This document shows positions 555 to 48,882 of a DNA stretch of 64,000 nt, in pieces. The position numbers and the translations under genes were made by a program. The stretch is from Mantamonas sphyraenae STR306 (lineage: Eukaryota > Protista > CRuMs), in NCBI GenBank assembly GCA_026936335.1, contig JAPMXV010000044.1:372001-436000 (forward strand). Direction: 5' to 3'. The notes beneath the pieces are model-generated. The model worked only from the letters and a program-made list of their open reading frames with translations, did not search any database and was not told where the DNA came from. Numbering within the stretch: the first letter of the stretch is position 1; each line of letters starts with the position of its first letter.

Positions 555-619
555 CGCGCGCGGTTTCATCACTCTTCCTCACTCTGATCACTGACCCTCC
601 GCTCCACACGTTGACGTGG
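1..619 (+). repeat. Direct segmental repeat, copy 1 (partner 9344-9961; left end outside window)
   Basis: Base-level match to 9344-9961 with one 3-nt indel, one 2-nt indel and a few substitutions; the match ends after ...TTGACGTGG. Confidence 0.97.
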
Positions 620-3600
620 CTTCTCCGGGCTGCTGTTCTGCTGCGACACATTGGCGTCACTGTTGCTCTTTGATTCCGCAAATGCACGGCTCCAAGCCTT
701 GTCCACGCGGTCTTTGCGCTCCATGAGTGCCGTTTGCATCTCCATGTCACGCAGGGCTGGCGGTGCACGGATGTACACGAGAATTACGGGTGTCACAATG
801 AACCCAAACCACATGCCCAGGAACACAGACATTGTGAGGACCACAAAGATGCCAAAGACGACGCCGCGTGTGAGGAAGATCAAGATGCCCAGCAGCGCAG
901 TGCTCACAAACCCATTGACCACTGCGGGCCCCATCTCCGCATATGCGTTCTGCATACGCTCCAGTGGCTTTCCTGGAGTGACAAAGAATTCGTGGACCAT
1001 GTGACAGCAAAAGTCCACCGCAATGCCCACGGACATGTACAGAGCCAGGGCGGAGCTTACATCCAGCGGGACGTTGAAGAAGCCGATGAGTCCCGCAGAA
1101 AGAGAAAAGGAGAAGCCAATGCTGACAAAGACAAACAACGCACCCAGTGGGTTGATCAGAAGCAGACAGGAGATGAGCACAGAGAACAGCTGGCCCAGCA
1201 ACACCGCGGTGCGCAGTTGGTCCCACAGCAGCACCGTCACCTCTCTCACGTACATGTCCGCAGCAAACACGCCCACTTGCGTGTTCCCATTGTCGTACTC
1301 AGCGACAATGCCACGGATTTTCCGGAAGAGTGCAATCACCTCGTGGACCACCGGCGATATCTTCACCTGCAGGGTCTCCTGGACAGCCACCAGTTGCCTT
1401 CTGGTTGCATCCTTGAAGCGGACGGTGCGCACGATCCAAGGGTACCGTGTGGAGGTGAGCATGGCGTCCAGCACGGTGTAAAAATCGTCGCGGCTTGCTG
1501 GGAGACCCGTGCTGGACAGCAGAGAGATGTTGTTCAGGGACTGGATGCCATGTTGTGATCGAAGAAAGATACGCATGTGGTTCAGGAGATGGATGGGTGT
1601 CGCTGCGGCCAGTGGGGTAAGTTTGGCCATCATCGCGTCGACCAACAGCTGTTGGGCTGGATCATGCAACTGTTCAGCCATGCGCCCGTCGTAGGTAATG
1701 TACACATCCTCTTCGGTCCCAGCAAAGAGGGTCTGGGTCTGTCTGTAGTAGACGCCGGGCGATTGGTTGCCGATGAACCATTCGTGCTGCGATGAGGCGC
1801 CGGGTTGAACATCATGCAGCCCCACAACTGCCACTGCAATGATGCCCATGGAGATGAGCATGACAATGACGTGTGTGACTTTGCTCCGCATGACGCGGAA
1901 AAATGGACCGGCGAGAAATGTGCGCAGGAGGGTGCTGGAGCGTTGCTGCAGGAACTTGCGTGCTGCCTCACGCTGCTGTGCCGCCTGAAATTGGTTGTAG
2001 GCATCAACGTCGTTCTGGGTGGCCCAGCGAGCGTCTCCACGAATGGTTTCACTTGCGAGCACGTTCATGGAGTCGAACACGGTGGATTCGCCTTCAGGGC
2101 GCAAGGACGCAGACCGTGGCGACTCCAACGCGGTCTGTGCACCACTTGCCACCGCCTCTGAGTGTGTGTGTCCATCCTCCTCTTCCACGACAGACAAGCG
2201 ACGAGGCGCAGGGTTGCCAGCCACGCTGACCACGTAGGTGTGGTTGCCATGGCTGCTGCGTCGTCGATCGCTCCCTGAGGTGCGCTGGGCATCTGTGGAG
2301 TTTCCCACGCTGCTTGCACGCATACGATGGTTGTTGGCATGGACGATCCTGCGTTCTGGCGAAGCATCTGCAATGGGTGACGAGTTGGAGCCGATGGTAA
2401 CCACTTCGGCGGAAGCGCTGGGGCGTCGTGACGAGTGTACGGGACTAGAAGTGGCCAGGCTGTCCGGCACCGACGTGGGGTCTTCCAAGTAGGGGTTGGA
2501 TACATGATGCACGTCGTCGATGATGGTCACCATGTGCTGACCAGCATCGCGTGAGCTGTCATCGTCCTCCTCGTCCCCATTCGTGGCAGTGGACTTGATG
2601 CAATAGGAACAGCAAGCACGTACGAGGCCCTTCTCGGAGGTTTCGAGATCCAAGTAGGTAAGTGCAGCGAAGAAGGTGACCTGGAACACGTAATCGACGA
2701 AGATGGCGATGGTGAGGAGGATGCCAAACATCTGCAAGGCGGGTGAGGGCGACCATGCCGACGACAGGAACACAGCCATATCTGTCACACTGGTCATGGT
2801 GATGCTTGTGCTGGCTGAGGGTGGGTGGTGGCGCGTGGAGACGCAGCGTGGGTGTCAGCAAAGGTGTGCGATGCGCGAGCGTTGTGCCGGGATCAAAAGG
2901 GAATCGACGCAGGAAACAGTGCCATTGGCAGACACACAGTCACGTACAGTCTGCCAAACCGACGGTAAAGCGCTTGCGAGGAGATCCCACACGCCTGTTG
3001 ACGCTGTTGAGCATGATGAACATGTCATCGACGCCGATGGCAAAGACAACAAACAAGCCCGGAATGGCTATGTTTGGGATGCCGCTGTCCTGTACAGCGA
3101 CGCACAGGAGCAGAGAAACGCCGATGGAGAGGATTACGTTCACGACGCCTGCGAGAACGAGTCGGACCTGCGAACGTTTGCGGTTGGGCTTGAAATTGAC
3201 AAGGGTGCAATACAGAAAGATGCTACCCAGCGCGATGAGATAGGTGGTGGGTGGTAAGGAGGAGGTGAGCACCTGTAGGGACGGCGAAGGCGCGTGTGTC
3301 AGCGGACCCAAAAACACACTGCTGTTCTTCTGGAAGCAACGGGAAAAAAAGGGGTGTCTCACCGTGGTTGATGTGCCGACAATGAGCGTGGGGAAATTGT
3401 AAGCCTCTGTAAAAAGTGCCACTGCATGGCCGATGATGCCGTAGCTGTTTGTCTCCTGGCGCCCAAACTTGTTCAGAGGAAGGTTGAACAGAGGGAAGCG
3501 AATCCGGAACGCGTGCGCAGAAATCGAGCTTCCCGAGACGGAAGCGTCACTGGAGAGGGCACCCTGCCTGGAGAGAAGGACTCCGGTATGCATGGCACGC

Positions 3601-4215
3601 ACGTCGAGCGTTTCCAGGCCGGTACCATTGGCGGCGACGGCAGCAGAGGCGGAATAAAGAGCAGCGACGGTGGAGGTGTTCAGGTCGATTGGCAGGCCTG
3701 CCAAAAGGCACTGGTCCCACGAAGGGCGGCAGTCGTGCGTGGACCCACGTTGCGCGAACCGACGAGTGCGTTTGTTGCGATGTCCGGGGATCGCGGGGCA
3801 CAGAGTTGGCCCAGGGAAAACGCTGAACCTTCAGGGAGTGCCACACGCACGCTTTCAAACAAACGTGTGAGGAAAATGCGCAGCTCAGAGAACGCCTCTG
3901 GGTAATGACATTGGCACCGGTGTGTTGTGAGGTGACCACGAGGGTGAGATGCTCGCGCAATCCAAACCGCGAAAGAGCGACTCTGGGCGAGTCGCGCAGC
4001 TCGGCGTTGGGAGCCAGCAGCCGCACGTCCTGGTCGAGGAACAGGCGGTCGGCAAACGGCACGAGGACAGCGACGATGACGAGTGGGAAGAGAACGTAGG
4101 GCCACGGATGATGGGAAATTCGGACGGCGTGGTTGTAGAACAGCGAGTGCAGCCACAGGTCCAACTTTAGGACCTGGACGCATGTAGCTGGGAGCTTTGC
4201 GCTGCAACACCACAT
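569..4215 (-). CDS. Patched/NPC1-family RND (sterol-sensing domain) 12-TM protein A, about 1140 aa; needs two +1-nt corrections
   Basis: Exons 4215-3363, 3272-2948, 2814-569; introns GTGAGA..CAG (90 nt) and GTACGT..CAG (133 nt). TM4 FAIGVDDMF, TM5 SITMTSVTD, TM10 VGIAVDFCCH, TM11 MGPAVVNGFVST. Frame jumps near 3900 (NVIT->PEAFSELR) and near 3725. No NPC1 N-terminal domain seen. Confidence 0.85.
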
Positions 4216-33879: not shown

Positions 33880-34027
33880 GGTTTTTGTGTTGTGTTGGAC
33901 AACGCGAAGCGACAACGGTGGATTGTTGGCGGGATGAGGATGCAGGTGACGGATGGTGGATGGGTGCGCTGAGGGTGGGAGGGTGTGCGTGTGGGTTCGT
34001 GTGCCCTCATTGCTCCAATATTATTCG

Positions 34028-35077
34028 ATGGAGGGGGTGTTTCAGCTCGTTGCCGACTTGGAGGGGTCCAAGGAGGACGTGATGCTGGCTGAGCTCGCCC
34101 AAGAGGCACTCCAGGCTTTGGGAACGGAGGCTGAAATGACGGTGATGGGCGAGATGGAGAAGCAGTGCCATGCATTGCTGCACAAAGGGGATTGGAAGCA
34201 GACTCGGATTGAACTGCGCCTGTTCTACGCTGCCATTGCCCTCTCCATGGCCACACACACACAGGATGTCGCCTGGATCGACAGGGGCATCCTATTTGGT
34301 CCCGTTGACATTGTCGAACCGACCACCGACCTCGACGCGGCCTACGCCACGCTCCTGGACAAGCTTCTTCCTCGCGCCCCGGATGGCAACTGGGAGGACG
34401 ACCCAGCCCTGTCGCCGTTGCACACCAGCGACGATGGGACACAGGACAGCCACAGCGGCCAGGCGGCGATGTCGCTGATGGAGTTTGGGAGGTATGTGGC
34501 TGAGAAGGAAGCGGTGGTGCTGAAGGGGGTGTTGGATGGCTGGCCTGCCATGTGGCGGTGGCAGCAGGACGGATACCTGAAGGAGTGTGTGTGGGGGCGG
34601 ACGATCCCAATCGAGGTGGGGAGCAGCTACCAGAGCGACGAATGGGAGGTGCAGCTGTGGGAGGGGCAGGAGTTTGTGGCAGCACTGCAGGAGGAGGATG
34701 GGCAGACGGGGAAGCTGCCGTACATGGCCCAACACGACCTCATGCGACAGATACCGCGGCTGTACGGGGATGTGTGTGTGCCAGACTACTGTGTGGGGCT
34801 GGTGGAGGGCGGAGGGGAAGTGGAGCCGCAGATGCGGATGTGGTGGGGACCTGGAGGGACACATTCACCGTGGCACAGTGACCCGTACGACAACATTCTG
34901 TGTCAGGTGCGAGGGAGGAAGCGTGTGCTGCTGAAGCGGGGCGAGGAGGAGGAAGAGGAGAAGGAAGTGGTCGTGGAAGTGGAACTGGGGCCAGGGGACG
35001 CGTTGTTCATTCCGAAAGGACATCTTCATGACGTGACGAGTCTGTGTGTGTCGATATCAGTCAGCTTCTGGTGCTGA
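34028..35077 (+). CDS. KDM8: JmjC 2OG oxygenase, JMJD5/KDM8-like
   Basis: LHKGDWK, WPAM.RW, GRTIPIEVGSSY...W, YMAQHDL..QIPRL..D..VPDYC, WWGP.GT.SP.HSD, H in IPKGHLH, SISVSFW. Confidence 0.88.
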   Translation: MEGVFQLVADLEGSKEDVMLAELAQEALQALGTEAEMTVMGEMEKQCHALLHKGDWKQTRIELRLFYAAIALSMATHTQDVAWIDRGILFGPVDIVEPTTDLDAAYATLLDKLLPRAPDGNWEDDPALSPLHTSDDGTQDSHSGQAAMSLMEFGRYVAEKEAVVLKGVLDGWPAMWRWQQDGYLKECVWGRTIPIEVGSSYQSDEWEVQLWEGQEFVAALQEEDGQTGKLPYMAQHDLMRQIPRLYGDVCVPDYCVGLVEGGGEVEPQMRMWWGPGGTHSPWHSDPYDNILCQVRGRKRVLLKRGEEEEEEKEVVVEVELGPGDALFIPKGHLHDVTSLCVSISVSFWC

Positions 35078-36279: not shown

Positions 36280-39200
36280 CTAACGCACAATGCCGGCGAA
36301 AATGCGGTTTCCGTCGCTGCCGCGCACATCGATGCCCGCATACGCGTCGAGCAAAAAGGCGATGCCGGCCACGAGCACAAAGAGCAGGACCATGACGGCA
36401 AGAGCACGCAGGGTGGACTTGAGGTCGCCTGTCTTGCGCTTGGGGCCGAGCACAGCCAGCAGGGCCGAAAACAGCGTCAAACTGTACACAATGCTCAGCG
36501 ACAGGGTCACTGCAATGATGATGCCAAACTTGGCAAACACCACAATCTGGGTGAAGCACAGCACGATGGCTGCGCCGATTGTCGTCACCGAGCTCACAAA
36601 CATGCTCACGCCCATCTCAGTCAGCGCTTCGCGAACACGCTGCTGCCTGCTCTTCTCCGGGTCGTGCTTGCCTGCCGTCGAGTACGCCTCGCCCAGATGC
36701 AGGCAATAATCCACAGAGAGGCCCACCAGGATGCTGATGGAGATGGCCTCCACCGCGCCCAGCGTCCAGCCTTGCAACACAAAGAAGCCCAGCATGCACA
36801 GCGTGATGCACGCAATCGTAAAGATGGCCGACAGTGCAATGCGCATCGAGCCGATAAACACGTACATCACAAAGAACGCAGTCACCATCGAGATCATGAT
36901 GCCGTACACCACGCCGTTCACAGCGCTCACCTCGGTCATCATGGCCACCCAGTTTGGCGACGTGTGGTACATCTTGTTGGCCGACGCCGGCGCCTCCTTG
37001 TTCGCCTTGATCGCAAACTTCTCCCATTGTTCGTAAAAGGGAAGCATCACAAAGCTGGGCAGATTCTCCTTGGCCACACCCAGCGCCTCCGCCACCACGT
37101 ACAGCACACGCTTCGCTCGTCCGTTTTCGTCGTACTCCAGACGCACGTCCTGGCGGAACTTGATGTTGCCCGTCGCCACGTAGTAGTCAAATGTGTCCAG
37201 GAAGTAACGCTTGTCCGTCACCGGGAACGGCGTCGTTCCGTTGTCCTTCTTCAGGATCCACTCCTTGTAGCCGCTCATCACACAGCGGCCTCCGCCTCCC
37301 TCCACAAACACCAACGACGTGTCGTTAAGTGCGTCCAGACACGTCTTGACAAGGTGTTCCTGCGCCGCAGGGTCCGTCAGGTCAAACGTCGTGTCGTACA
37401 GCGGCGTGCCCACGTTTTCGCTCAGCGGATCGTTCTGGTCGGCCGTGCTTCGGTCGATGCCCTTCAGTCCCCACACCATGGACACGGTGACACGCGCCAG
37501 CTCCAACGGGGGCGAAGGGAAGCAGGCGTTGCTGCCTCCACACACGCCGCACAAGTCGTACTGAGTGCCCGAGTTGGGAATCCCGTCGCAGCCTGCACAC
37601 GTGCCGTTGTTGCCCGCACACACACCACACCCATCCATGGTGGAATTGGCATACTGTGGTAGTGTGCACACGCCACAATAGTCGTAGCGCAGGCCCGAAT
37701 TCGGCACTCCATCGCATCCTGCGCACGTTGCGTTTGTGCCGTTGCACACGCCACACGCGTCAAGCACAGCCGTGCCGTTAATTGTGCCCGCACAGTCCGC
37801 GCACGACGAGCCGTTGCCTGCACACACGCCGCACCCGTCAAACTGCAAGCCCGAGTTTGGCACGCCATCGCAGCCGCGGCACGTGCTGTTGTCCCCAAAG
37901 CAGACGTCACACAGGTCTCGCGACGCATTGGTGTTGGATCCTGGAGGCACGCACGACCCGCAGCTGTCATTGAAATAACCCGAGTTTGGCTTGCCGTCGC
38001 ATCCTGCACACGTGCTGTTGTCGCCTCCGCACACGCCGCACCCGTCGTACACCGCACCCGAGTTCGGAATGCCGTCACATCCCGCGCATGTCTTGTTCGC
38101 ATTGGCTGCCGTCACGCACAGGCCGCACGCATCGTAGCTCTTGCCGGAGAAAAACACGCCGTCGCACCCTCGGCACGTGCCGTTGTTGCCTCCACACACG
38201 CCGCACACGTCGTACACCGCACCCGAATTGGGAATCCCATCACATCCCGCGCATGTCTTGTTCGCATTGGCTGCCGTCACACACAGACCGCACGCGTCGT
38301 AGCTCTTGCCCGAGTTCGGTACGCCGTCGCATCCTGTGCACGTTGCGTTGTTGCCAGCACACACGCCGCAGGCATCGTACACCGCACCCGAGTTGGGGAT
38401 GCCGTCACATCCCGCGCATGTCTTGTTCGCATTGGCTGCCGTCACGCACAGGCCACACGCATCGTAGCTCTTGCCCGAGTTGGGTGCGCCGTCGCAGCCC
38501 GCACACGTTGCGTTGTTGCCGCCACACACGCCGCAGGCATCGTACACCTTTCCACTCTTGGGCACACCGTCGCACCCGAGACAGGTGCTGTTGTTGCCGT
38601 CGCACACGCCGCACGCATCAAACTTCTTGTTGCTTCCTCCGACGCCGTCGCACCCGATGCATGTGCTGTTGTCTCCGCCACAAATGCCGCAGGCGTCAAA
38701 CACTGCGCCACTGCCTGCCACTTCGTCGCACCCGATGGCCTCATCCACCACAGAGGTCACGTTGTAGCCCAAGCTTGTGCCGTTGCCCACCGCTGCCTGC
38801 ACGTCGTTCGACGACGTCACCTTTGGATTGCTGGCGATCTCCACCACCACAATCACCGATCCGCTCTTGACCGACTTGAGCACAATCAAGTCCACAGAGA
38901 TGTTCAGCTGCCTGGCCAGGTTCTCTTTGAACAGCGTTTCGTTGAACGTAGACACAGATCCCTGCATCGTGATCTTGGTCACCACCGACGTGTTGCTCAC
39001 GGGCTGTGTGCACGACGTTCCGTTGCCGTTGATGATACCACATGCGTCTCGGCACGACGACGAGTCGCCTGCACACACGCCACACAGATCGTACACTGCA
39101 CCGCTGTTTGGAATCCCGTCACATCCCGCGCACGTCTTGTTCGCATTGGCTGCCGTCACACACAAACCACAGCCGTCGTAGCTCTTGCCCGAGTTGACAA

Positions 39201-42031
39201 TGCCGTCGCAGCCCGTGCACGTTGCGTTGTTGCCTCCACACACGCCGCAGGCGTCATATGCAGCACCCGAATTGGGGATGCCGTCACATCCCGCGCACGT
39301 CTTGTTCGCATTGGCTGCCGTCACACACAGACCGCACGCGTCGTAGCTCTTGCCCGAGTTGACGATGCCGTCGCAGCCCGTGCACGTTGCGTTGTTGCCT
39401 CCACACACGCCGCAGGCATCATATGCCACTCCCGAATTCACGACGCCGTCACAGCCCCTGCAGGTTGAATTTGTGCCACCGCAGACGCCGCATGCGTCGT
39501 ACACCTTGCCCGAATTGGCAACGCCGTCACAGCCCTTGGTTGCACACGTGCTGTTGTCGCCGTTGCACACGCCGCACGCGTCCAACAGGCTACCCGAGTT
39601 GGGAATGCCGTCGCAGCCTGCGCAAGTGCTGTTGTTTCCTCCGCACACCCCGCAGCCGTCGTACACCAGGCCCGAATTGGGCACGCCGTTGCAGCCTGCA
39701 CATGAGCTGCCATTGCCTCCGCACACACCGCACGCATCGTACGCCTTTGGGGGCACCTTGACGACGCCGTCACATCCGGTGCACGTTGCATTGTTGCCAT
39801 TGCACACGCCGCATGCGTCTAGAGTGGCGCCGCTGTTGGGGATGCCGTCGCAGCCTGCACAAGTGCTGTTGTTGCCTCCGCACACACCGCAGCCGTCGTA
39901 ACGAGCAGGCGGGTTTGCGGCCACGCCGTTGCATCCCACACACGTCGAAGCGTCGCCTCCACACACGCCGCACACGTCGTATGTCCTGCCGCTTCCCTGC
40001 ACGCCGTCGCACCCAGGACACGAGCTGCTGTCGCCGTCGCACACGCCACAAATGTCGTACACCTTTCCCGAGTTGGGTACACCGTCGCAGCCCAAGCAGC
40101 TAGTGCCGTCGCCGCCGCACACGTTGCACTGGTCCACAACACGGCCCGAGTTGGGCACGCCATCGCACCCGAGGCATGCGTTGTTGCCTCCACACACGCC
40201 GCAGCGGTCGTATCGTCGCGTGCCCACATTCCCTGCGTACACTACGCCGTCGCATCCGATGCAGGCTGTGCCGTCGCCGTCGCACACGTTGCACCTGTCC
40301 AACACCTTGCCCGAATTCGGCACACCGTCACAACCGTTGCCGGCTCCAATGTCTGTCAGGCACGCGCGGCATCGTCCCGCCTCGGTGAACGACTTGCTCT
40401 GGTCCGTGAAGCGTTGGATGTTGTGGGAGTCGGGGAAGAACTGCGGCAGTTCGTCTGCTGGCTTCATCTGCACCGTAAACACGGCGCCGACCACGGCCAA
40501 GCCCACAAACAAAACAATGACCACGTAGCGTGCGGCGTACAGGCCGTCTGTGTAGTATGTCTGGAAGAAGCGCTCCATGACTCCCAGCTTGGCCGCAGGC
40601 GCTTCGTCCCACGTCGACTCGGCTGTGGAAATCGTGGCACGGATCGTACCCACGCGCACTGTGGTCTTGCCATTGCTGTTCGCCAGCTTCTTGCTCAATG
40701 CGCGCGTCTCCTCATCTTCGGTGTCATCCACATTCGTCACCGCCGCTTTGACGCTGCTCGTGTCGCTGCCGCTGTCGTTGTCGTCCGAGTTGCGGCCACA
40801 GGAACAGCAGCCTCCATCGTCGTCCAGCACCTCGCCCGTCTTTGCGTCGTACCGCTCCCGCGCACACACGCACGTGCCGCACTTGCCAAAGTATTTGTAG
40901 TGGATGCAGACAATGGCTGGGAAGAGCGTCATGACCAGCACGTAGTTCATGGTCACCATCAGGGACATAAAGATGCCAAACAGGCGAATGGCAGGGATTT
41001 CCGAGACGATGTTGGCTGCAAACGCACCGGCGGTGGTCAGCGAGGTGATCAGCATGGCCTTGCCCGAATGCGTGTACGTGAAGCCCATGCGCTTGTTGAT
41101 GTCGCGCGTCACCGTGCCCGACTGCCGAAAGTGGTCCACGTAGATGAAGATGTCGTCCACGCCAATGCCCAGAATGATAAAGATGGCCAGGCCGTTCATC
41201 ACGCCCACCACCTTGACCCCGAGCAGGCCTCGGTACAGGAAATACACCGAGGGGAACGACATCAAGATCTGGATCATGCCGCCCATGCTGATGAACAGCG
41301 AGCGCGTGTGCAGCCACAACAGGAGGAATACCGACCCCAGCGAGATGAGCGCCAGCTGGATATCCTCGTAGAACGTGCGTAGGAGCTGGTCTTGCGTGAT
41401 GAAATCTCCACCAAAGGACAGCCGCACATCCTTCGTCTCATACGTGGGCAGGACGTCGATGTACTTTGTGATGAACGCCGTGAAGATGGCCTGCTGCGCC
41501 GTCTTGCGGTCGTACTCGTCTCTGTAGCCATCGAGGGGAGTGCCAAAGTGAAACGTGCTTCGCAAGTAGCTGCTCTTGAGGTTGTCCCTGTTGAAGGACT
41601 TGTCCACGTAAAAGTAGTTGCCCGACTTGAGGATGCCCAGCATGGTTGTCTGCACGTCGGCCATGGTGTTGCCGCGGCCGTCCCACTTGGTGGAGCCCGT
41701 CTCCGAGTTGTTGCTCGGATAGAAAAAGTTCATGACGGTGTGTGGCGGCAGGCAGTCGTACGCGTAGTTGTCCTGGCGCCAGCAAAAGTCGCTGTATCCG
41801 GCAAACGCCACAATCTTCTTTTCGATCTCGCGCACCTGGGCAATGAAATCGGCCTGCAGCATGTTGGTGCCGTTCACACGATGCTCGTAAATGACATTAA
41901 GCAACCACGTGGACTTGATGCGCCTGCCTGTGCTTGCGTTGGCCGTGCGTTCGTGTCCGTTCTCTTCCAATTGCAGGTTACGCAACAGTTGATCCTCTGT
42001 GCTGCGTGTGTGCTGCGCCTGAGCATCACTC

Positions 42032-42062
<31 letters not shown>

Positions 42063-43282
42063 CCGCGTCTGCGCTGTGCAGACGACGCGAAAGCTGGTTG
42101 TATCGTGCAACGCCCCTCAGCGCCTGGCTGCTTACACCTCGCATGCGGGCATACTCCATGGCCATACGTTCCACCAGACTCAGACTCTCTCGTGTGTCTG
42201 CTTCCTGGTCTTCACGTGTGCGCGTCCCCTCTGCGCCTGCACGGCGTATTGCTTCGGCAGGGTCGTTCTGTCCAAAAACGGAGCGCAACGACGCCGCCGA
42301 CGTCCGTGTCCGTGTACTGCCTGCTGCCACCTCTGCCGACGAGGACGACGAGGCTGTCAGCGCACTCGATGAGCTGCTGGGTTTGTCGAGGTAAAAAGTT
42401 TGGTTGGAAGGCCTGGCTGTGGGCACGTTGATGGCCGCCGTCATGCCGTCCTCCCGCTCTGCCACAAAGTGATCCTGGATGCGAAACGCGCCGATGCCAA
42501 AATCGATGGTTACGTCTGGATACAGCACGTACGCGCCTGCACCCATGCCCAACTGCGCACGCGTGGTTGCGATGGTGTCAGGGGCCGGGTCTCTGTGATC
42601 TCAATTCACACGGGCACGCAGCCGTTTCCTCCACCCGTCACGGGTGGCCACAGCATCGCTCGCACGCACAACATACCGGAATGCAGAGAAAGAGAACAAA
42701 AAACAAACAGGGTGCTCGCAGAATGAGGTTTGTGAACCAGAACGAGTGACACTCTTGGATGTGTCCAAGGCGCTCTCCGTCCTGGCTGTACCTCGCTTGC
42801 AGCTCCGAGGTGGTTGTGCTTTCGTCACCGGACTTGTCCATTGTGGTCATTTCGATGTCTGCATGTGTGGTGCGGGCAAAGGGGCCAGGGACAATGTCCG
42901 GAGGTGTGAGGGCGTGTGTCTACAAGGTCTCGAACTTGCGCACATGTGCGTTTCCGGGCCGTTTCGAACCTTTTGTCGTGCCACTTTCGGTGCCTTTTGT
43001 CAGCTTGCTCCACAGTGTGCTCTCACCAGAGGCCTTGGGAGCAGTGTCTCCATCCTTGCTGATGGATGACGAGTCCTTGGCGGCCTTGCTTGAAGCCTTG
43101 GGTCGAGTCGACAAGGTGAGCATCTCGCTTTCGTCCGCCTTCCGGTGGGCAGCCACCGTGGGAGACTTGGGTGTTGCTCCAAACCGAGACGACGTCAACT
43201 CTGCCTTTTGTTTGCGTCCGGCTCGCGTCGCAGTGGATCCCTGCGCAACGCCAGAGTTGCCAACCGCGTTCCTGCTGCTCAT
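36280..43282 (-). CDS. Dispatched-family (DISP3/PTCHD2-like) RND protein, about 2236 aa, with a Cys-repeat/SEA insertion
   Basis: Exons 43282-43027, 42858-42677, 42552-36280. TM4 LGIGVDDIF, TM5 AMLITSLTT, TM10 VGLSVDYCLH; ECD1 EIEKKI...FCW...CLPPHTVMNFFYP resembles DISP3. Confidence 0.88.
37520..40335 (-). repeat. About 30 tandem ~26-aa Cys-rich coding repeats (GCDGxPNSGxxYDxCGVCxGxNxTC) interrupted by a SEA-like module
   Basis: Counted in the translation: 16 units before and 14 after the non-repetitive segment at about 38750-38990. Confidence 0.95.
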
Positions 43283-43431: not shown

Positions 43432-46400
43432 ATGTTTGCCTGCCACCGAACGCTCCACGCACAGACCGGCGTGGATGCTTGTCTGCAGGCCAACTTTTTG
43501 TCGTCGCAGGACACCAATCTGGTGCTGGTCAAGGGCAACATGCTGGAGATCCATCGACTGGTGCAGGCCGGCGAGAGGAACCAGCCCAAGCTGGAGCTGG
43601 CCCATCGCTTCGACCTCTTTGGCGTCCCGCGCAACGTACAGCGCATGCATCTGCGCGACACAGACACAGACGCTTTGCTCATGCAGGTGGACGGTGACAA
43701 GGTAAGGTGGCCCTCGCTGCTGGTCGGGCTCTCTGTGCGACGTGTGCACGCGCCGTGTCACCCTGCACCACCGCGTGTCAGAAAGCCCTCTCCCACTCGC
43801 CCGGCTCCACGCTCACACAGCCCTCCCCACACAGATTGCCATGGTCGACTTTGACCCCAACACAAACGCGTTGCGCACTCTTGCCCTTCGCTCGTTCGAC
43901 AAGTCCAAGTTCCCCGTAAGTTGCGCCTCTTCCCGGGGTCGCATGTTCCGCCAGCCACCCGCTGCTGACACTCGCCTCCCTTGCGGCCGTGGCCCTCTTT
44001 CCCGCGCCCGTCCCTGTCACAGAACGACCGCGCCGAGTTCCAGGCAGATCAAATTCTGCGTGTGGACCCGCAGAACCGCTGCCTGGTGTATCTGGCCTTT
44101 GATCGCAACCTCGTGCTGATCCCCTTTACAGACTACAGCAGCTTCCTGACACTCAAGCGGAGGCACAGGCACCGAACCAAGCTGCAGAGCACAGAAAACG
44201 CTCTGGAGGATATGCAGGTGGGTGTGGACACATACAACCAGGACCACACCTATCTGGGAGGTGAATTGGTGTTGGACCTCGCCGAGCGCGGCATCAACCA
44301 CGTCAAGGACGTCCAATTCCTCCACGGCTACTTCCAACCCACCTTTCTCATCCTCTACGAATCGAAACAAACGTGGGCCGGGCGTGAGGCCATGCTGAAG
44401 AACACATGCTGCGTGCGGGCAATCAGCGTCAACTTGGAAACACGCGCGTTCACAGACATCTGGTCCATGGAAGGGCTGCCGCACAACGCCTTCCGTTTGC
44501 AACCCCTGCCCAAACCCATTGGCGGCGCAGTCATCCTCTGCATCAACGAGCTTGTGTATGCGGACCAGAAGAGCAGTTTTGCGGTCGGCTTGAACCACTT
44601 TGCAGGCTCGCAGCAGGACAAGGCGTACACCATGGACAAGAGCGAGCTCATGGACACGCATCCCATCTCGTTGGATTCCGCACACGTGCTTCTGCTCCAC
44701 AAGTCGCGCATGCTGCTCAACCTGGCTTCCGGCGATCTCTTTCTCGCCGAGCTCTTCACAGACGGCCGCTCCGTCACCGAGATCAAAATCAGCATGGCTG
44801 CGTCCGGCGTGCCCAGCTCCGACATGTGTCTGTTTGCAGACCACTTTTTCTTCATTGCCTCGCACACCTCGGATTCGCTGCTGGTCCAGTTCCACGAGAA
44901 GCGCGACGAAATCGACACTTCCGTCACCAAGCTGGCTCGCACGGAGAACGTCGCAGACGTCAAGGGAGGTTCATCATCATCATCGTCCTCCTCTTCCTCC
45001 TCATCGTCGTGGGCCTTGCTGGACGAGGCGCTGGTCGATCAGGAGTTGTACGACGAGAGCGCCTCGTCCATGTTTGCCACGGTGCAGCATCCGTTTGTGG
45101 GCTATTCCTATGCCGTGTGCGACCAAATGCTGAACGTGGGCCCCATCCATGACTTTGTGGTCACCGAGTCGGTGGACGTACGGCCGGACGTCGACGAAAG
45201 CGTCGATGTGCCCTTCTTGGAAATCCTGGCCTCGTGTGGCACAGACAGCGACGGTAGCCTTGCCATCCTTCAGCAAGGCGTGCGTCCCATCCTTGAGCAC
45301 CGCAACGTGACCTCGTTCCCAGGCTGCAAGGCCCTGTGGTCGGTCAAGTACCGGGGCAAGTTTGAACAGGTTAGCGCAGCGGCGCAACAGGAGGGTGGCA
45401 GTGACGACATGGCTGTGGAGGAAGCAGCCGGAGACGCAGACACTGACGAGGAAGAGGACGAAGAGGAGGAAAACTACGACGCCTTTCTGGTTGTGGGCAT
45501 GGAGGACTCGACGCGTGTGCTGCATGCGGGCGAAAGCCTGAACGAAGTGACACGCGAGGTGGACTTTCTCGTGAACGGCCCCACGGTGTGTGTGGGCAAC
45601 GTGGTGTCCGAGAAACTTGTCGTGCAGGTGCATCGCAACGGAGCTCGCTTGCTGGACGGCGGCAAGGCGGTGTACGATGCCACAGCGCCAGGTGATGTCA
45701 TTGCGGCACAGGTGGAGGATCCGTATGTGCTGCTTGTGCTCAGCCACGGACAGATGCAGGTGTTGCGTACGCAGTGGGCGGAAGAAGACGAGCAGGGACC
45801 CAGCGGCTACAGGCTGGTCGAGCAAAAGGTGGAGTTGACACAGCCCGGCACAGGTACAGTCACGGCCGCCACGGTGGCTCACGACCGTGCAGGCTACTCG
45901 CCCATCTTTTCATCACGTGGTGTGAAGCGCGAGGAGATTCTTCGCCAACAGCAGATGGCCGAAGAGGAGAAGCGCAAGCGACTGTTGGCCGAAGAAGATG
46001 CCATGCAGGAGGAACAGGACAAGGTGGTGGGTGGACGTGCAGGCTCTGCAGCAGCCGCAGCCGCAGCAGCTGCATCGTCGTCGTCTTCATCGTCAAGCAG
46101 CGACGAAGAGACACAGCAGCAACAAGCAACCACGGAAGCGACCCAAGAGGACGAAATGGATGAGGAGGACCTGCTTTTCTACGGAGACAACTTTGGCGTG
46201 ACGGTGACGGAAGACGGTGAAGAGGTGACGACAAGCGAAGCGGCGGGCAGGAAACGCAAGCTGGAGGAGATGCAAGCGGCAGAAACGGCAGCAGCAGTTG
46301 CTGCAGCAGACGGCGAGTTTGAGGACGGCGACGTGGTGTCGCCCATGTTTAGTGTGATCACACGCGGCAACGGAGCGCTGGAAATCTACAAGATGCCCGA

Positions 46401-48882
46401 GTTCAAGCTTCTGTTTCTGTGCAACGAATTCAACCAGGGGCCGCCGCTGCTGCGCGACGCAAACGACCGCTACGACGCAGACTTTGACCACGAGAAGGAG
46501 GCGGAGAGCGACAGCGACAGCGACGACGACGACTTTGACTTTTTCCTGCCGGCGTACTCGCGAGCACAGCAGAACCGAGTGGTGCAGGAGGTGCGCTTCG
46601 TCTTTCAGGGCTCGTACGAGGACAGGTACAACGGCTACCTGATGGCCCACCTGAGCACAGGCGACCTGCTCGTCTACCAGGCCTTTATGTTCCCCAAGAG
46701 CGTGCCCAACCACCTGCTCTTTGCGGATTTGGGCGCAAACAGCAGCACCCAGGCTCGCCTGCAAAGCGGCCACTCGCTGCAGCTGCGCTTTTCCAAGGTC
46801 AACCATGGCTTCATCACACGCAATCTGCTCAGTGCAGAGACGCTGACGTCTGGTGTGACCATTTTCGATCAAAACAGCACAAAGACGACTGTGGTGGAGG
46901 AAGGAACAGCCGCTGCCTCCTCCTCATCGTCTTCATCGTCTTCGTCGTCGTCTTCGTCGTCATCGTCGTCGTCTATCCGACTCAAGATGGAGTTGCAGAT
47001 GGAAAAGGAAGCCCAGGGCAACGCCGGCGAAACGGAGCAAGGCGCTGAGATCCGCTATGCTCGTATCTTTCCGTTTGAGGACATCTCTGGGCGGTCGGGC
47101 ATCTTTGTACGTGGCGAGCGATCGGGATGGTTCTATTCGGATCGCAACTACCTGCGCATGCACCCGATGAGCGTGACTGCATACGAAACGTCCAACGAGA
47201 CGATTGCGTTTGCGCCCTTCCACAACGTACTGTGTCCCAACGGCTTTGCGCTGGTCAACTCTCGTGAGGAGTTTCACATCGCACGCATGCCCACAGACCA
47301 GCACTTTGAGACGGGCTGGTCGGTGCGCAAAATCCCCATCGGCCAGACGGTGCGCAAGTTGGCATACCACAGGCCAAGCAAGACGCTTGCGCTGGCTCTG
47401 GCCTCCAAGAAGGAGGTGTGGAACGAAGACTATGCGCAGGACCCAACCAAAGTACCGCTGTACGATGAAGAGCACACGCTTGCGCTCGTGTCGATGGAAA
47501 CGTTTGAGGAGCTGGACCGATTCACGCTGCGCGAAAAGGAGCACATCCTTGCACTCAAAGTGTGCAGTTTGTTTACAGAAAGCGCCGGGGTGGGCCAATC
47601 GCGCATGGACATCATCTGTGCCGGCTTGGGTGTGGCCGAAACCGAGGAGCAATTGATGCGTGGACGCCTCTTGCTGCTCAACGCCACTGAAAAGTCGGTG
47701 GTGGATGTGGACAGCCAAGAAGGCGAGGATGACGAGGGAGGTGAGGAAGGCGAGGGAGAGGGATCTACAGGGGCAGTGGAGGGCGGCGCCAACAACGAGC
47801 AAGTCGGCGAACAGCCCGAGGCAGGTGCACAGGACGTGGAAGAGGTGGAAGTGAAGGATGAAGGAACAGAAAATGAGGATGCGATGGAAGAGGACGACAA
47901 AGCGGCTGCGGATGGTATTTCAGAGACTGCAGAAGGCGAGGGGGAGGAGGAGGAGGAGAAGCAGGAGGCGGAACAGGAGGAGGAGGAGGAGGAGGAGGAG
48001 GCGCAAACCAAGCTTGGATTCCATCTGATGTGCGAAATGGAGCGTGTGGGCCCGGTGACGTGTCTGTGCGAGATCGATGGGTACATCTCGTTCACGTCGG
48101 GCCCCAAGCTGTACATATTCGATTTCCAGAGCGGTGAGTCGCTGACGCCGCGTGCGTTCTGGGATTGCAAGGTGTACGTGGCCACGCTACAGGCCGTCAA
48201 GGGCATCCTGATGATCGGAGACATGTTCCAGAGCATCACAGTGTTGCGGTGGAAGCCGCGACGAAGGCAGCTGGTGGAGGTTGCGCGCGACGTCCAGACG
48301 CTGGTGTTGTACTCGACAGACTTTGTGCTGGAGGATAAGAACATGAGTTTCCTGGTCACTGACAACGGCGGCAACATGCAGCTGCTGTCGTATGCGCCGA
48401 ACAAGGTGGAATCGCGTGGTGGCTTGCATCTCGTGCGTCTGGCCGATTTCCATTTGGGGTCGCTCGTGACGCGACTGCTGCGCATGCGAACCAAGGTGCT
48501 GCACGTGAACCAGTTGACTACGACCACGCGTGTGCATTCGCGGCAGCAAGTCAACTTTTACAGCACCGTGGACGGCGGCATCGGCATCATTGTGCCTCTG
48601 AGCGAGCGCACGTTTCGCAGACTCACAGCGTTGTACTCAAAGATGGTCACTGCATTGCCGCACCACGCAGGTCTCAACCCGGTGGGTTTCCGCGCCTTTC
48701 GCAACAACAAGCACAACGTGCGTGCAAAGCGCCGCAAGAACATCGTCGACGGCGACCTGTTGTACAAGTACATTGGGCTGGAAGCCAACACACAGCGCAT
48801 GCTCGCTCGCCAGGTGGGTTCCACGCCGGAGAACATCATCAACAACCTGTTGGAGATGGAAATGGCAACCGCGTTCTTTTGA
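43432..48882 (+). CDS. CPSF1: Cleavage and polyadenylation specificity factor subunit 1 (CPSF160)
   Basis: Exons 43432-43701, 43835-43915, 44023-48882. Motifs RVDPQNRC, DVQFLHGYFQPTFLILYE..QTWAGR, FAPFHNVLCPNGF, LPHHAGLNP.GFR, NIVDGDLL. Confidence 0.95.

Follow-up and report, generated by a model that had tools for sequence, protein, structure and literature searches.

The minus strand of the window analysed here, a 64,000-nucleotide stretch of Mantamonas sphyraenae DNA, carries an intact nuclear gene whose product comprises at least 2148 residues, in a GC-rich protist with a 25-Mb genome. The gene and the features discussed below, with residues numbered along the exon-2 translation unless stated otherwise, are:

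43027-43282, minus strand: possible additional 5' exon, hypothetical, with an ATG at 43282-43280, encoding a cytosolic tail of about 85 residues rich in Lys, Ser and Thr
42677-42850, minus strand: exon 1, 58 codons from the ATG at 42850; the first half of TM1, preceded by a short cytosolic N-terminus
42553-42676, minus strand: predicted intron, 124 nt, GTATGT..CGCAG, phase 0, with a CA-rich 3' end
36280-42552, minus strand: exon 2, 2090 codons plus stop, uninterrupted; ECD1, TM2-7, the insert, the remaining ECD2 and TM8-12
40894-41295, minus strand: sterol-sensing domain, TM2-6 (PF12349, E 2.9e-25; PF02460, E 2.7e-23), with the TM4 motif GIGVDD at 41152-41169
40471-40527, minus strand: TM7, the anchor directly before the insert (hydropathy peak YVVIVLFVGLAVVGAVFTV), at a place that agrees with the paralogue comparison
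39010-40332, minus strand: outward arm, residues 741-1181; 16 regular repeats, each with four Cys in 26-29 residues, and one truncated unit
38728-39000, minus strand: SEA-like module, residues 1185-1275, about 90 residues, with the folded core at about 38743-38985
38857-38862, minus strand: Gly1231-Ser1232, the first two residues of GSVIV (38848-38862), joined by the candidate self-cleavage bond
37522-38730, minus strand: return arm, residues 1275-1677; 13 units, three of them compound, equivalent to about 14-16 four-Cys repeats
36283-37521, minus strand: conserved part of ECD2 and TM8-12, with the TM10 motif GLSVDY at 36706-36723 and an MMPL match (PF03176, E 3.9e-19)
36349-36405, minus strand: further C-terminal hydrophobic segment, from hydropathy

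The first-pass annotation had placed the gene at 36280-43282. The frame is not unbroken from 43282: on direct reading the open reading frame that starts there terminates at a stop at 42922, and TM1 lies in an exon of its own at 42677-42850. The TM1 peak of the hydropathy scan, LILRAPCLFFVLFLCIP-LG, straddles the junction of exons 1 and 2, and the intron at 42553-42676 is needed because TM1 must join the long frame beginning at 42552. A second hypothetical intron at 42859-43026 (GTGAGA..GCAG), its donor GGTGAG following 43027 and its acceptor GCAG preceding 42858, would link the 43282 reading frame in frame to exon 1. The exons were searched separately, and the translations of exons 1 and 2, and of the hypothetical 5' exon (exon 0) and exon 1, were joined for the hydropathy scan and the frame check.

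Judged by sequence similarity, the protein is a Dispatched-family SSD/RND transporter. Pfam assigns residues 420-553 to the Sterol-sensing/Patched SSD and residues 1860-2038 to MMPL, the hydropathy peaks fit 12 TM helices and one extra, and the acidic motifs are kept, with GIGVDD at residue 462 in TM4 and GLSVDY at residue 1944 in TM10. Among the solved families, Dispatched comes closest in both halves of the protein: DISP1 is the best match of the N-terminal half (E 9e-28; next family PTCH1, 6e-12) and of the C-terminal half (E 8e-26 over 357 residues including ECD2; next family NPC1, 1e-12), leading by 13-16 orders of magnitude in E-value, and kinship with Dispatched as against Patched, NPC1 or PTCHD was judged from these solved-structure matches rather than from a phylogeny. 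Within the product of 36283-37521, residues 21-377 align with DISP1 (7rph) residues 614-972, with GLSVDY aligned to DISP1 GLSVDF; the DISP1 counterpart of the TM4 motif is GIGADD. Pfam, motif positions and DISP1 matches thus agree on the Dispatched-like 12-TM RND protein that had been proposed at first reading. Since the core keeps the intramembrane Asp residues of ion coupling, we infer from its family that it is probably an active exporter, and its cargo would probably be a lipid or lipid-like. Five Dispatched-like paralogues in the same genome share 31-37% identity, in frames of just 771-1160 residues; the present gene is thus one of six of this kind in a 25-Mb genome that also holds SSD genes to a total of about 30.

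What sets this protein apart from animal Dispatched (DISP1; PDB 7rph, 6xe6, 7e2g), with which it shares the 12-TM RND/SSD plan, two extracellular domains and the aligned GxGxDD (TM4) and GLSVD (TM10) acidic motifs, is an insert of 938 residues (residues 740-1677) at the start of ECD2, the second extracellular domain. An insertion of about 940 residues in the second extracellular loop had been claimed, and the count bears it out: in the two paralogues read (of the five), the conserved F-x-R motif that follows TM7 is separated from the V-x-V-W-G strand by about 20 residues, at exactly this site. The insert holds 126 Cys, against 20 in the remaining protein, and 37 N-x-S/T sequons, and is presumably glycosylated. 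Its frame is open across 2.8 kb of DNA of 59% GC, and its junctions with conserved ECD2 are in frame on both sides. The insert is best explained as a lineage-specific domain insertion that replaces a short loop at the start of ECD2.

Most of the insert consists of a repeat with the spacing C-x12-C-x2-C-x6-C, arranged as two arms around a central module. The earlier count of 16 repeats and then 14 was about right: there are 16 and a truncated unit, which directly precedes the module, and then 13 units of which three are compound. Cys spacing and sequons are kept from unit to unit, with an N-x-S/T sequon in most units of the outward arm, a pattern far beyond chance. Both arms also share a 55-residue higher-order repeat, and at the nucleotide level the return-arm copies are 82-88% identical to the outward-arm copy at residue 1060 and 76-81% to that at residue 1115. 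In eight of ten pairs of 55-residue copies, synonymous codon changes equal or outnumber non-synonymous ones (for example 11 against 4 and 11 against 5), and in the other two they are one fewer, from which it follows that the repeats evolve as coding sequence. The same repeats turn up on 10 or more further contigs of the genome, among other places in the ectodomains of two TRP-type channels, and the four-Cys repeat is a general surface stalk module of this organism.

The likeness of the unit to the ADAMTS Cys-rich motif, also claimed earlier, is genuine for D-x-C-G-V-C-G-G-x-N-S-T-C but does not extend to the whole Cys-rich domain. Repeated matches to Pfam ADAMTS_CR_3 (PF19236) lie above the cut-off (E 2.3e-33), confined to profile positions 87-115 of 115, the last 29, and the matched portion is the CGVCGGxNSTC motif, not the whole ADAMTS Cys-rich domain. 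In contrast to ADAMTS, the motif is central here to a 26-residue unit that stands on its own and recurs in tandem about 30 times, and this unit is used on many surface proteins of the organism.

The two arms are near-equal, as had been supposed, measuring about 440 residues outward and about 403 on return. Because the ends of the insert lie a few residues apart in ECD2 and the termini of the predicted module fold lie side by side, the chain is expected to follow an out-and-back path, which would put the SEA-like domain at the tip of the insert. Structure prediction of a complex with five units per arm gave a score of 0.00, which bears on arm pairing neither way. The architecture itself, a two-armed repeat insert with a central module in a transporter, is real.

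The central module probably has a SEA-like fold, according to structure prediction. The AlphaFold2 model from alignment A2, built on six sequences only, has pLDDT 83 and pTM 0.72 and the order b1-a1-b2-b3-a2-b4 (strands 6-12, 39-45, 49-55 and 80-86, helices 21-32 and 64-71, in module numbering). A single-sequence model was set aside as too weak (pLDDT 61; its Foldseek list was mostly BMC shell proteins). The best structural neighbours of the A2 model are IA-2/phogrin (Z 8.4-7.8), the Notch2 HD (7.8) and dystroglycan (7.2); IA-2/phogrin and the Notch2 HD fill the top seven places of the re-aligned list, ahead of RRMs (Z 7.7-7.0), and dystroglycan 597-713, PCDH15 MAD12 and the MUC16 SEA domain are further top matches. 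All five of these named neighbours have been described as SEA/SEAL domains (PMC11527881; bioRxiv 10.1101/2022.04.04.487063). Z scores between 7 and 8.4 denote a common arrangement, Foldseek E-values are just 5e-3, and RRM and ACT domains score within one Z unit of the SEA-like neighbours. No match to Pfam SEA (PF01390) was found at E <= 10 in the module, in the six family members or in the genome, no SEA chains were returned by profile and single-sequence searches of solved structures with the module, and the first named SEA cluster in a feature search scores only 0.83. The SEA assignment of the first-pass annotation thus stands as regards predicted topology and the SEA-like top neighbours, but lacks a Pfam SEA match and is tied by RRM-type folds; on balance, we lean towards the module being a true SEA/SEAL relative.

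The GSVIV motif proposed as a cleavage site lies exactly at 38848-38862 and, within K-S-G-S-V-I-V-V, its Gly and Ser fall in the predicted beta2-beta3 turn, as had been anticipated: in the model G47-S48 stands between b2 (39-45) and b3 (49-55). The autoproteolysis motif is G|S[V/I]VV (PMC8011033). All six family members found keep G-S-[VI]-I, each as [SA]-G-S-[VI]-I. With 27-37% identity among the relatives, only five columns of the six-member alignment are invariant, and Gly, Ser and the next Ile account for three of these. The relatives comprise small proteins made of an S/T-rich region, the module and a TM helix, a GPI-like surface protein of the same genome and a Planoprotostelium receptor kinase with the module between an LRR region and the second kinase domain, and in these relatives the module adjoins the membrane or a mucin-like stretch. 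Word-indexed searches (family member P0008; alignment A2) and a metagenome scan with the module as query gave no more module relatives. A 3237-residue Planoprotostelium fungivorum protein, considered as a product of the present genome because an open frame there has the same length, was rejected when tblastn gave no match there.

SEA/SEAL domains (MUC1, MUC16, dystroglycan, IA-2/phogrin, the Notch HD and PCDH15 MAD12) are likewise extracellular and stand beside a heavily glycosylated stalk, and those of MUC1 and dystroglycan self-cleave at the beta2/beta3 hairpin, where the present module has G-S-[VI]-I (PMC8011033; bioRxiv 10.1101/2022.04.04.487063). The present module differs from them in giving no Pfam SEA match and in its setting, for it is not membrane-proximal but enclosed within a polytopic transporter, probably at the tip of a loop, so that a cut would leave two transporter chains and no sheddable ectodomain. 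The choanoflagellate Sema-FN1 joins a repeat stalk and an S/T-rich glycosylated region to a self-cleaving SEA domain with the motif G|S[V/I]VV, proposed as a mechanical breaking point (PMC8011033). Like the present protein it is a protist surface protein that combines repeat stalk and SEA domain, but its SEA domain is juxtamembrane in a single-pass protein, whereas the module here lies between two arms in a transporter loop. Our literature search found no paper combining 'Dispatched' and 'SEA domain', in line with the earlier view that this layout is undescribed. No orthologue with the same architecture appeared in a homologue search with the N-terminal half or in two metagenome scans, with the module and the C-terminal half; the former returned four proteins, of which the nearest is 1196 residues long and hence without the insert, and the scans gave no relatives for either query.

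Taken as a whole, the explanation that we consider somewhat better than even is a Dispatched transporter with a nested ectodomain and a SEA-like tip that may or may not cleave itself. The outward repeats would lead to a SEA-like domain, from which about 14-16 further copies of the repeat would run back, all forming one nested ectodomain, and a strained beta2/beta3 hairpin carrying G-S-V-I-V could be cut between Gly1231 and Ser1232. The two chains of the resulting transporter would stay joined through the SEA sheet and the membrane domain. Such self-cleavage during folding is plausible, at a chance that we put close to even and slightly below it.

Less likely, though a serious contender, is that the SEA-like module remains uncut and acts only as a compact cap or hinge at which the chain turns round, its neighbouring termini letting the arms run antiparallel, with G-S as a structural tight-turn motif. 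Cleavage would shed nothing, since both arms stay anchored in ECD2, and many SEA-like domains are not autoprocessed, among them three of the best structural neighbours, IA-2, the Notch HD and PCDH15 MAD12 (bioRxiv 10.1101/2022.04.04.487063). Against this, G-S-[VI]-I fits the autoproteolytic consensus and is invariant despite the divergence of the relatives. To our knowledge, non-cleaving SEA-like families do not have this motif. We think it unlikely that the module is instead an unrelated ferredoxin-like domain of a protist-specific surface family, its topology convergent with SEA and its G-S of other function or none: the missing sequence-level tie to SEA, the low-scoring SEA cluster of the feature search and the RRM, ACT and other ferredoxin-like folds scoring level with most SEA-like entries speak for it, but the setting of the module is extracellular, in its relatives it adjoins the membrane or a mucin-like stretch, SEA-like ectodomains consistently head the list of neighbours and the motif falls exactly at the SEA cleavage hairpin. 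That the insert is absent from the mature protein as read, through splicing of part of it or repeat mis-assembly of its size, is very improbable, because although short introns are in use in this genome and repeat arrays whose copies are 76-88% identical are easily collapsed or expanded during assembly, the 2.8-kb frame stays open at 59% GC, every unit keeps its Cys spacing and sequons, synonymous changes between copies are in excess and both conserved-ECD2 junctions are in frame.

Beyond the favoured nested ectodomain with its SEA-like tip, one may ask what a cut tip would do. In a self-cleaved two-chain transporter, the halves would be linked outside the cell only through a force-breakable beta-sheet at the tip of the long glycosylated hairpin. 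If prey, substrate or the coat of the cell itself pulled on this stalk, the hairpin could open and ECD2 might be altered, which would couple load to lipid export, a scheme that we regard as a long shot. Were it true, an RND transporter would carry a mechanosensor of its own in this force-coupled tip. In animal Dispatched the cut is made by furin and falls in ECD1, whereas here a domain within ECD2 would cut itself, and the likeness between the two is loose for that reason. A force-sensing antenna and a Hedgehog-like cargo are speculation; an exon-by-exon six-frame genome search, of uncertain sensitivity, found no Hint/Hog domain (PF01079) at E <= 0.01.

Work on Dispatched, Patched and NPC1 has been almost confined to animals and fungi, and the extracellular domains of these proteins are viewed as compact cargo-handling units. 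The tolerance of an ectodomain of about 1000 residues at a defined ECD2 loop marks this loop as a spot for engineering or natural elaboration. In addition, the module family, which spans S/T-rich proteins with a TM helix, a GPI-like protein and an amoebozoan receptor kinase, may represent a protist branch of the SEA/SEAL superfamily that escapes the present Pfam models. If the module does cleave, SEA-type autoproteolysis would reach a deep-branching protist family and a new topological setting, cleavage within a polytopic transporter, and the protein would provide a simple model for the role of SEA cleavage where shedding is impossible.

The gene lies on the minus strand, where 2090 codons can be translated without interruption between 42552 and 36280, the first of them already within a transmembrane (TM) helix. 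In the upstream DNA we read a further 58 codons which, joined to this frame through a 124-nt intron, yield a 2148-residue protein:

42677-42850 (-): exon 1, start ATG at 42850, 58 codons ending in the first half of the TM helix
42553-42676 (-): intron, 124 nt, phase 0, donor GTATGT at 42676, acceptor CAG ending at 42553
36280-42552 (-): exon 2, whose residue numbering is used throughout
38728-39000 (-): SEA-like central module of the insert

The first-pass annotation had the gene begin at 43282. The ATG there opens an ORF of its own, which runs into a stop at 42922; an in-frame connection to exon 1 would need another, hypothetical intron of 168 nt (GTGAGA..GCAG, 43026-42859; GGTGAG donor, CA-rich GCAG acceptor). 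If real, the extra exon at 43027-43282 (-) would add an 85-residue Lys/Ser/Thr-rich cytosolic N-terminus, and either gene model, with a start at 42850 or at 43282, is possible. The flanking genes, encoding a CPSF1/DDB1-type triple beta-propeller protein (43981-48879, +) and a JmjC/cupin protein (33953-35074, +), are ordinary nuclear housekeeping genes; the gene does not sit in an island of surface-protein genes.

Pfam assigns residues 420-553 to a sterol-sensing/Patched domain (SSD) and residues 1860-2038 to a second half of MMPL type. Among all solved structures the N-terminal half matches Dispatched-1 best (E 9e-28; PTCH1 6e-12, NPC1 3e-10), as does the C-terminal half (E 8e-26 over 357 residues including part of the second extracellular domain, ECD2; NPC1 1e-12). 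The acidic motifs noted earlier in the core were borne out, with GLSVDY in TM10 aligned to GLSVDF of DISP1 and GIGVDD in TM4 matching its GIGADD. Because Dispatched-1 is the best match of both halves and the TM4 and TM10 motifs are paired, the core has the look of a functional, ion-coupled transporter of the Dispatched type, and every testable feature except cargo places it in the Dispatched branch of SSD/RND proteins. A Hedgehog-like cargo is left without support, since a genome search detected no Hint domain. The 25-Mb genome (78 contigs) holds about 34 SSD matches, a large family for a genome of this size, and five further Dispatched-like genes at 31-37% identity. At a distance of 33 kb, the same strand carries another gene of the SSD/Patched type (569-3704, -), its SSD split over two ORFs by an apparent intron. 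Past TM12, a strongly hydrophobic segment (ALAVMVLLFVLVAGIAFLL; 36349-36405, -) reaches the hydropathy maximum of the protein (3.07) and is followed by a 22-residue tail; if this segment is a 13th TM helix, as it could be, the C-terminus would be extracellular. ECD1 also has a low-complexity stretch (~41950-42385, -), located after TM1 and ahead of its conserved part, with poly-Ser, an (SN)n run and a region rich in Thr and Arg; this may be another lineage-specific insertion of smaller size.

The large insert proposed for the second extracellular loop is confirmed by comparison with two paralogues on contigs C30 and C24. In these, a conserved F-x-R motif just past TM7 and the strand V-x-V-W-G, with which the conserved part of ECD2 opens, are only about 20 residues apart, and the homology of our gene to DISP1 and the paralogues restarts exactly at this strand. 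In our gene the gap is filled by 938 residues, of which 126 are Cys, and contains 37 N-x-S/T sequons. The outward arm comprises 16 regular units, each 26-29 residues long (C-x12-C-x2-C-x6-C), and one truncated unit; about 93 residues free of Cys, which include the central module, occupy the middle; and 13 units, three of them compound, form the return arm. A 55-residue higher-order repeat occurs in two copies before the module and three after it; in comparisons across the arms, the copy at residue 1060 shows 82-88% nucleotide identity and that at 1115 shows 76-81%. In eight of ten pairs of copies synonymous codon differences equal or outnumber non-synonymous ones, a pattern that points to a translated array under purifying selection. 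The suggested resemblance to ADAMTS is real at the level of the motif and extends no further, since the Pfam ADAMTS_CR_3 matches cover only the last 29 profile positions.

The central module had been taken for a putatively self-cleaving SEA domain. AlphaFold2, given a six-sequence alignment, predicts (pLDDT 83) the succession b1-a1-b2-b3-a2-b4 and puts G47-S48 in the b2-b3 turn; in this model the topology is that of SEA/SEAL domains and G47-S48 occupies the position of their self-cleavage bond, for which the SEA consensus is G|S[V/I]VV (PMC8011033). Foldseek against the PDB returned the membrane-proximal ectodomains of IA-2/phogrin (TM 0.63, E 5e-3), dystroglycan and CELSR1. In a second-look alignment the top seven were IA-2/phogrin and Notch2 HD (Z 8.4-7.8, rmsd 2.4-3.1 over 80-87 residues), and a search independent of Foldseek gave IA-2, PCDH15 MAD12, CDH23 MAD28, dystroglycan 597-713, MUC16 SEA and Notch2 HD (Z 7.8-6.5), where values below 8 may reflect just a common arrangement; RRM and ACT domains score less than one Z unit from these SEA-like neighbours. 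The Pfam SEA model matched neither the module nor its relatives nor anything else in the genome, and sequence searches of the module against solved structures gave no match. The earlier identification agrees with the predicted fold and the placement of the GS pair and fails at the level of sequence profiles: the module is not a demonstrated Pfam SEA member, although it is predicted to work like a SEA/SEAL domain and probably is one. We consider a divergent SEA-like domain the likely reading because of the predicted fold, the position outside the cell next to putatively glycosylated stalks, and a conserved motif in the hairpin where it would be expected.

Exhaustive HMMER searching found only five relatives of the module. 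One is an LRR receptor kinase of Planoprotostelium fungivorum, with the module past the LRR region and about 200 residues ahead of the second kinase domain; P0008 has a signal peptide, an S/T-rich stretch, the module, a TM helix and an acidic tail; the shorter P0007 has the module and then a TM helix; P0009 ends in a GPI-like tail; and P0006, lacking an alignable stretch, was excluded from the alignment. A profile search of the Mantamonas genome added one paralogue of GPI-like layout as in P0009 (L003:1342-2727, -, contig C35), the only other copy there. Its protein of about 460 residues keeps S-G-S-I-I and carries the module at the C-terminal end, after which come a linker rich in Pro, Thr and Ser and a hydrophobic tail resembling a GPI signal. 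The six-sequence alignment has just five invariant columns, and the G, S and I of [SA]-G-S-[VI]-I account for three.

The ends of the insert exit and re-enter ECD2 inside a loop only 20 residues long in the paralogues, and the termini of a ferredoxin-like sandwich are adjacent to each other, so that the two near-equal arms would go out and back as a hairpin with the module at its tip. Self-cleavage at Gly1231-Ser1232 is a tentative proposal to which we give slightly less than an even chance. An N-to-O acyl shift at this bond would produce a two-chain protein, with TM1-7, arm 1 and b1-a1-b2 in one chain and b3-a2-b4, arm 2, ECD2 and TM8-12 in the other, held together by the SEA sheet and the membrane domain. 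Whereas SEA cleavage in mucins sheds material, the cleavage proposed here would release nothing, so its purpose would have to lie elsewhere; it might, for example, relieve strain in folding, make the loop breakable or gate ECD2. A force-sensing role for the stalk is attractive but speculative.

A homologue search with the N-terminal half and metagenome scans with the module and the C-terminal half found no orthologue of the same architecture, and in the literature searched no paper joined Dispatched and a SEA domain; the first-pass annotation likewise knew of no description of the arrangement. On the repeat motif and ADAMTS, the literature gave one review, which was unrelated. The novelty, drawn from the DNA of one gene in one genome, lies in known parts in a topology that we did not find described: a SEA-like domain between two repeat arms in a transporter loop. 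The four-Cys unit itself is present on at least ten other contigs of the genome, with some copies in frames that stay open for 5897 and 6849 residues. Two loci (L037:2362-7230, +, contig C62; L038:3789-8603, -, contig C18) encode TRP-type (PF06011) channels of about 1600 residues whose N-terminal ectodomains carry four-Cys repeats 71-72% identical to those of the Dispatched-like gene. Membrane proteins of several classes are thus decorated with the repeat in this organism, and it seems to serve Mantamonas as a stalk module for surface proteins in general.
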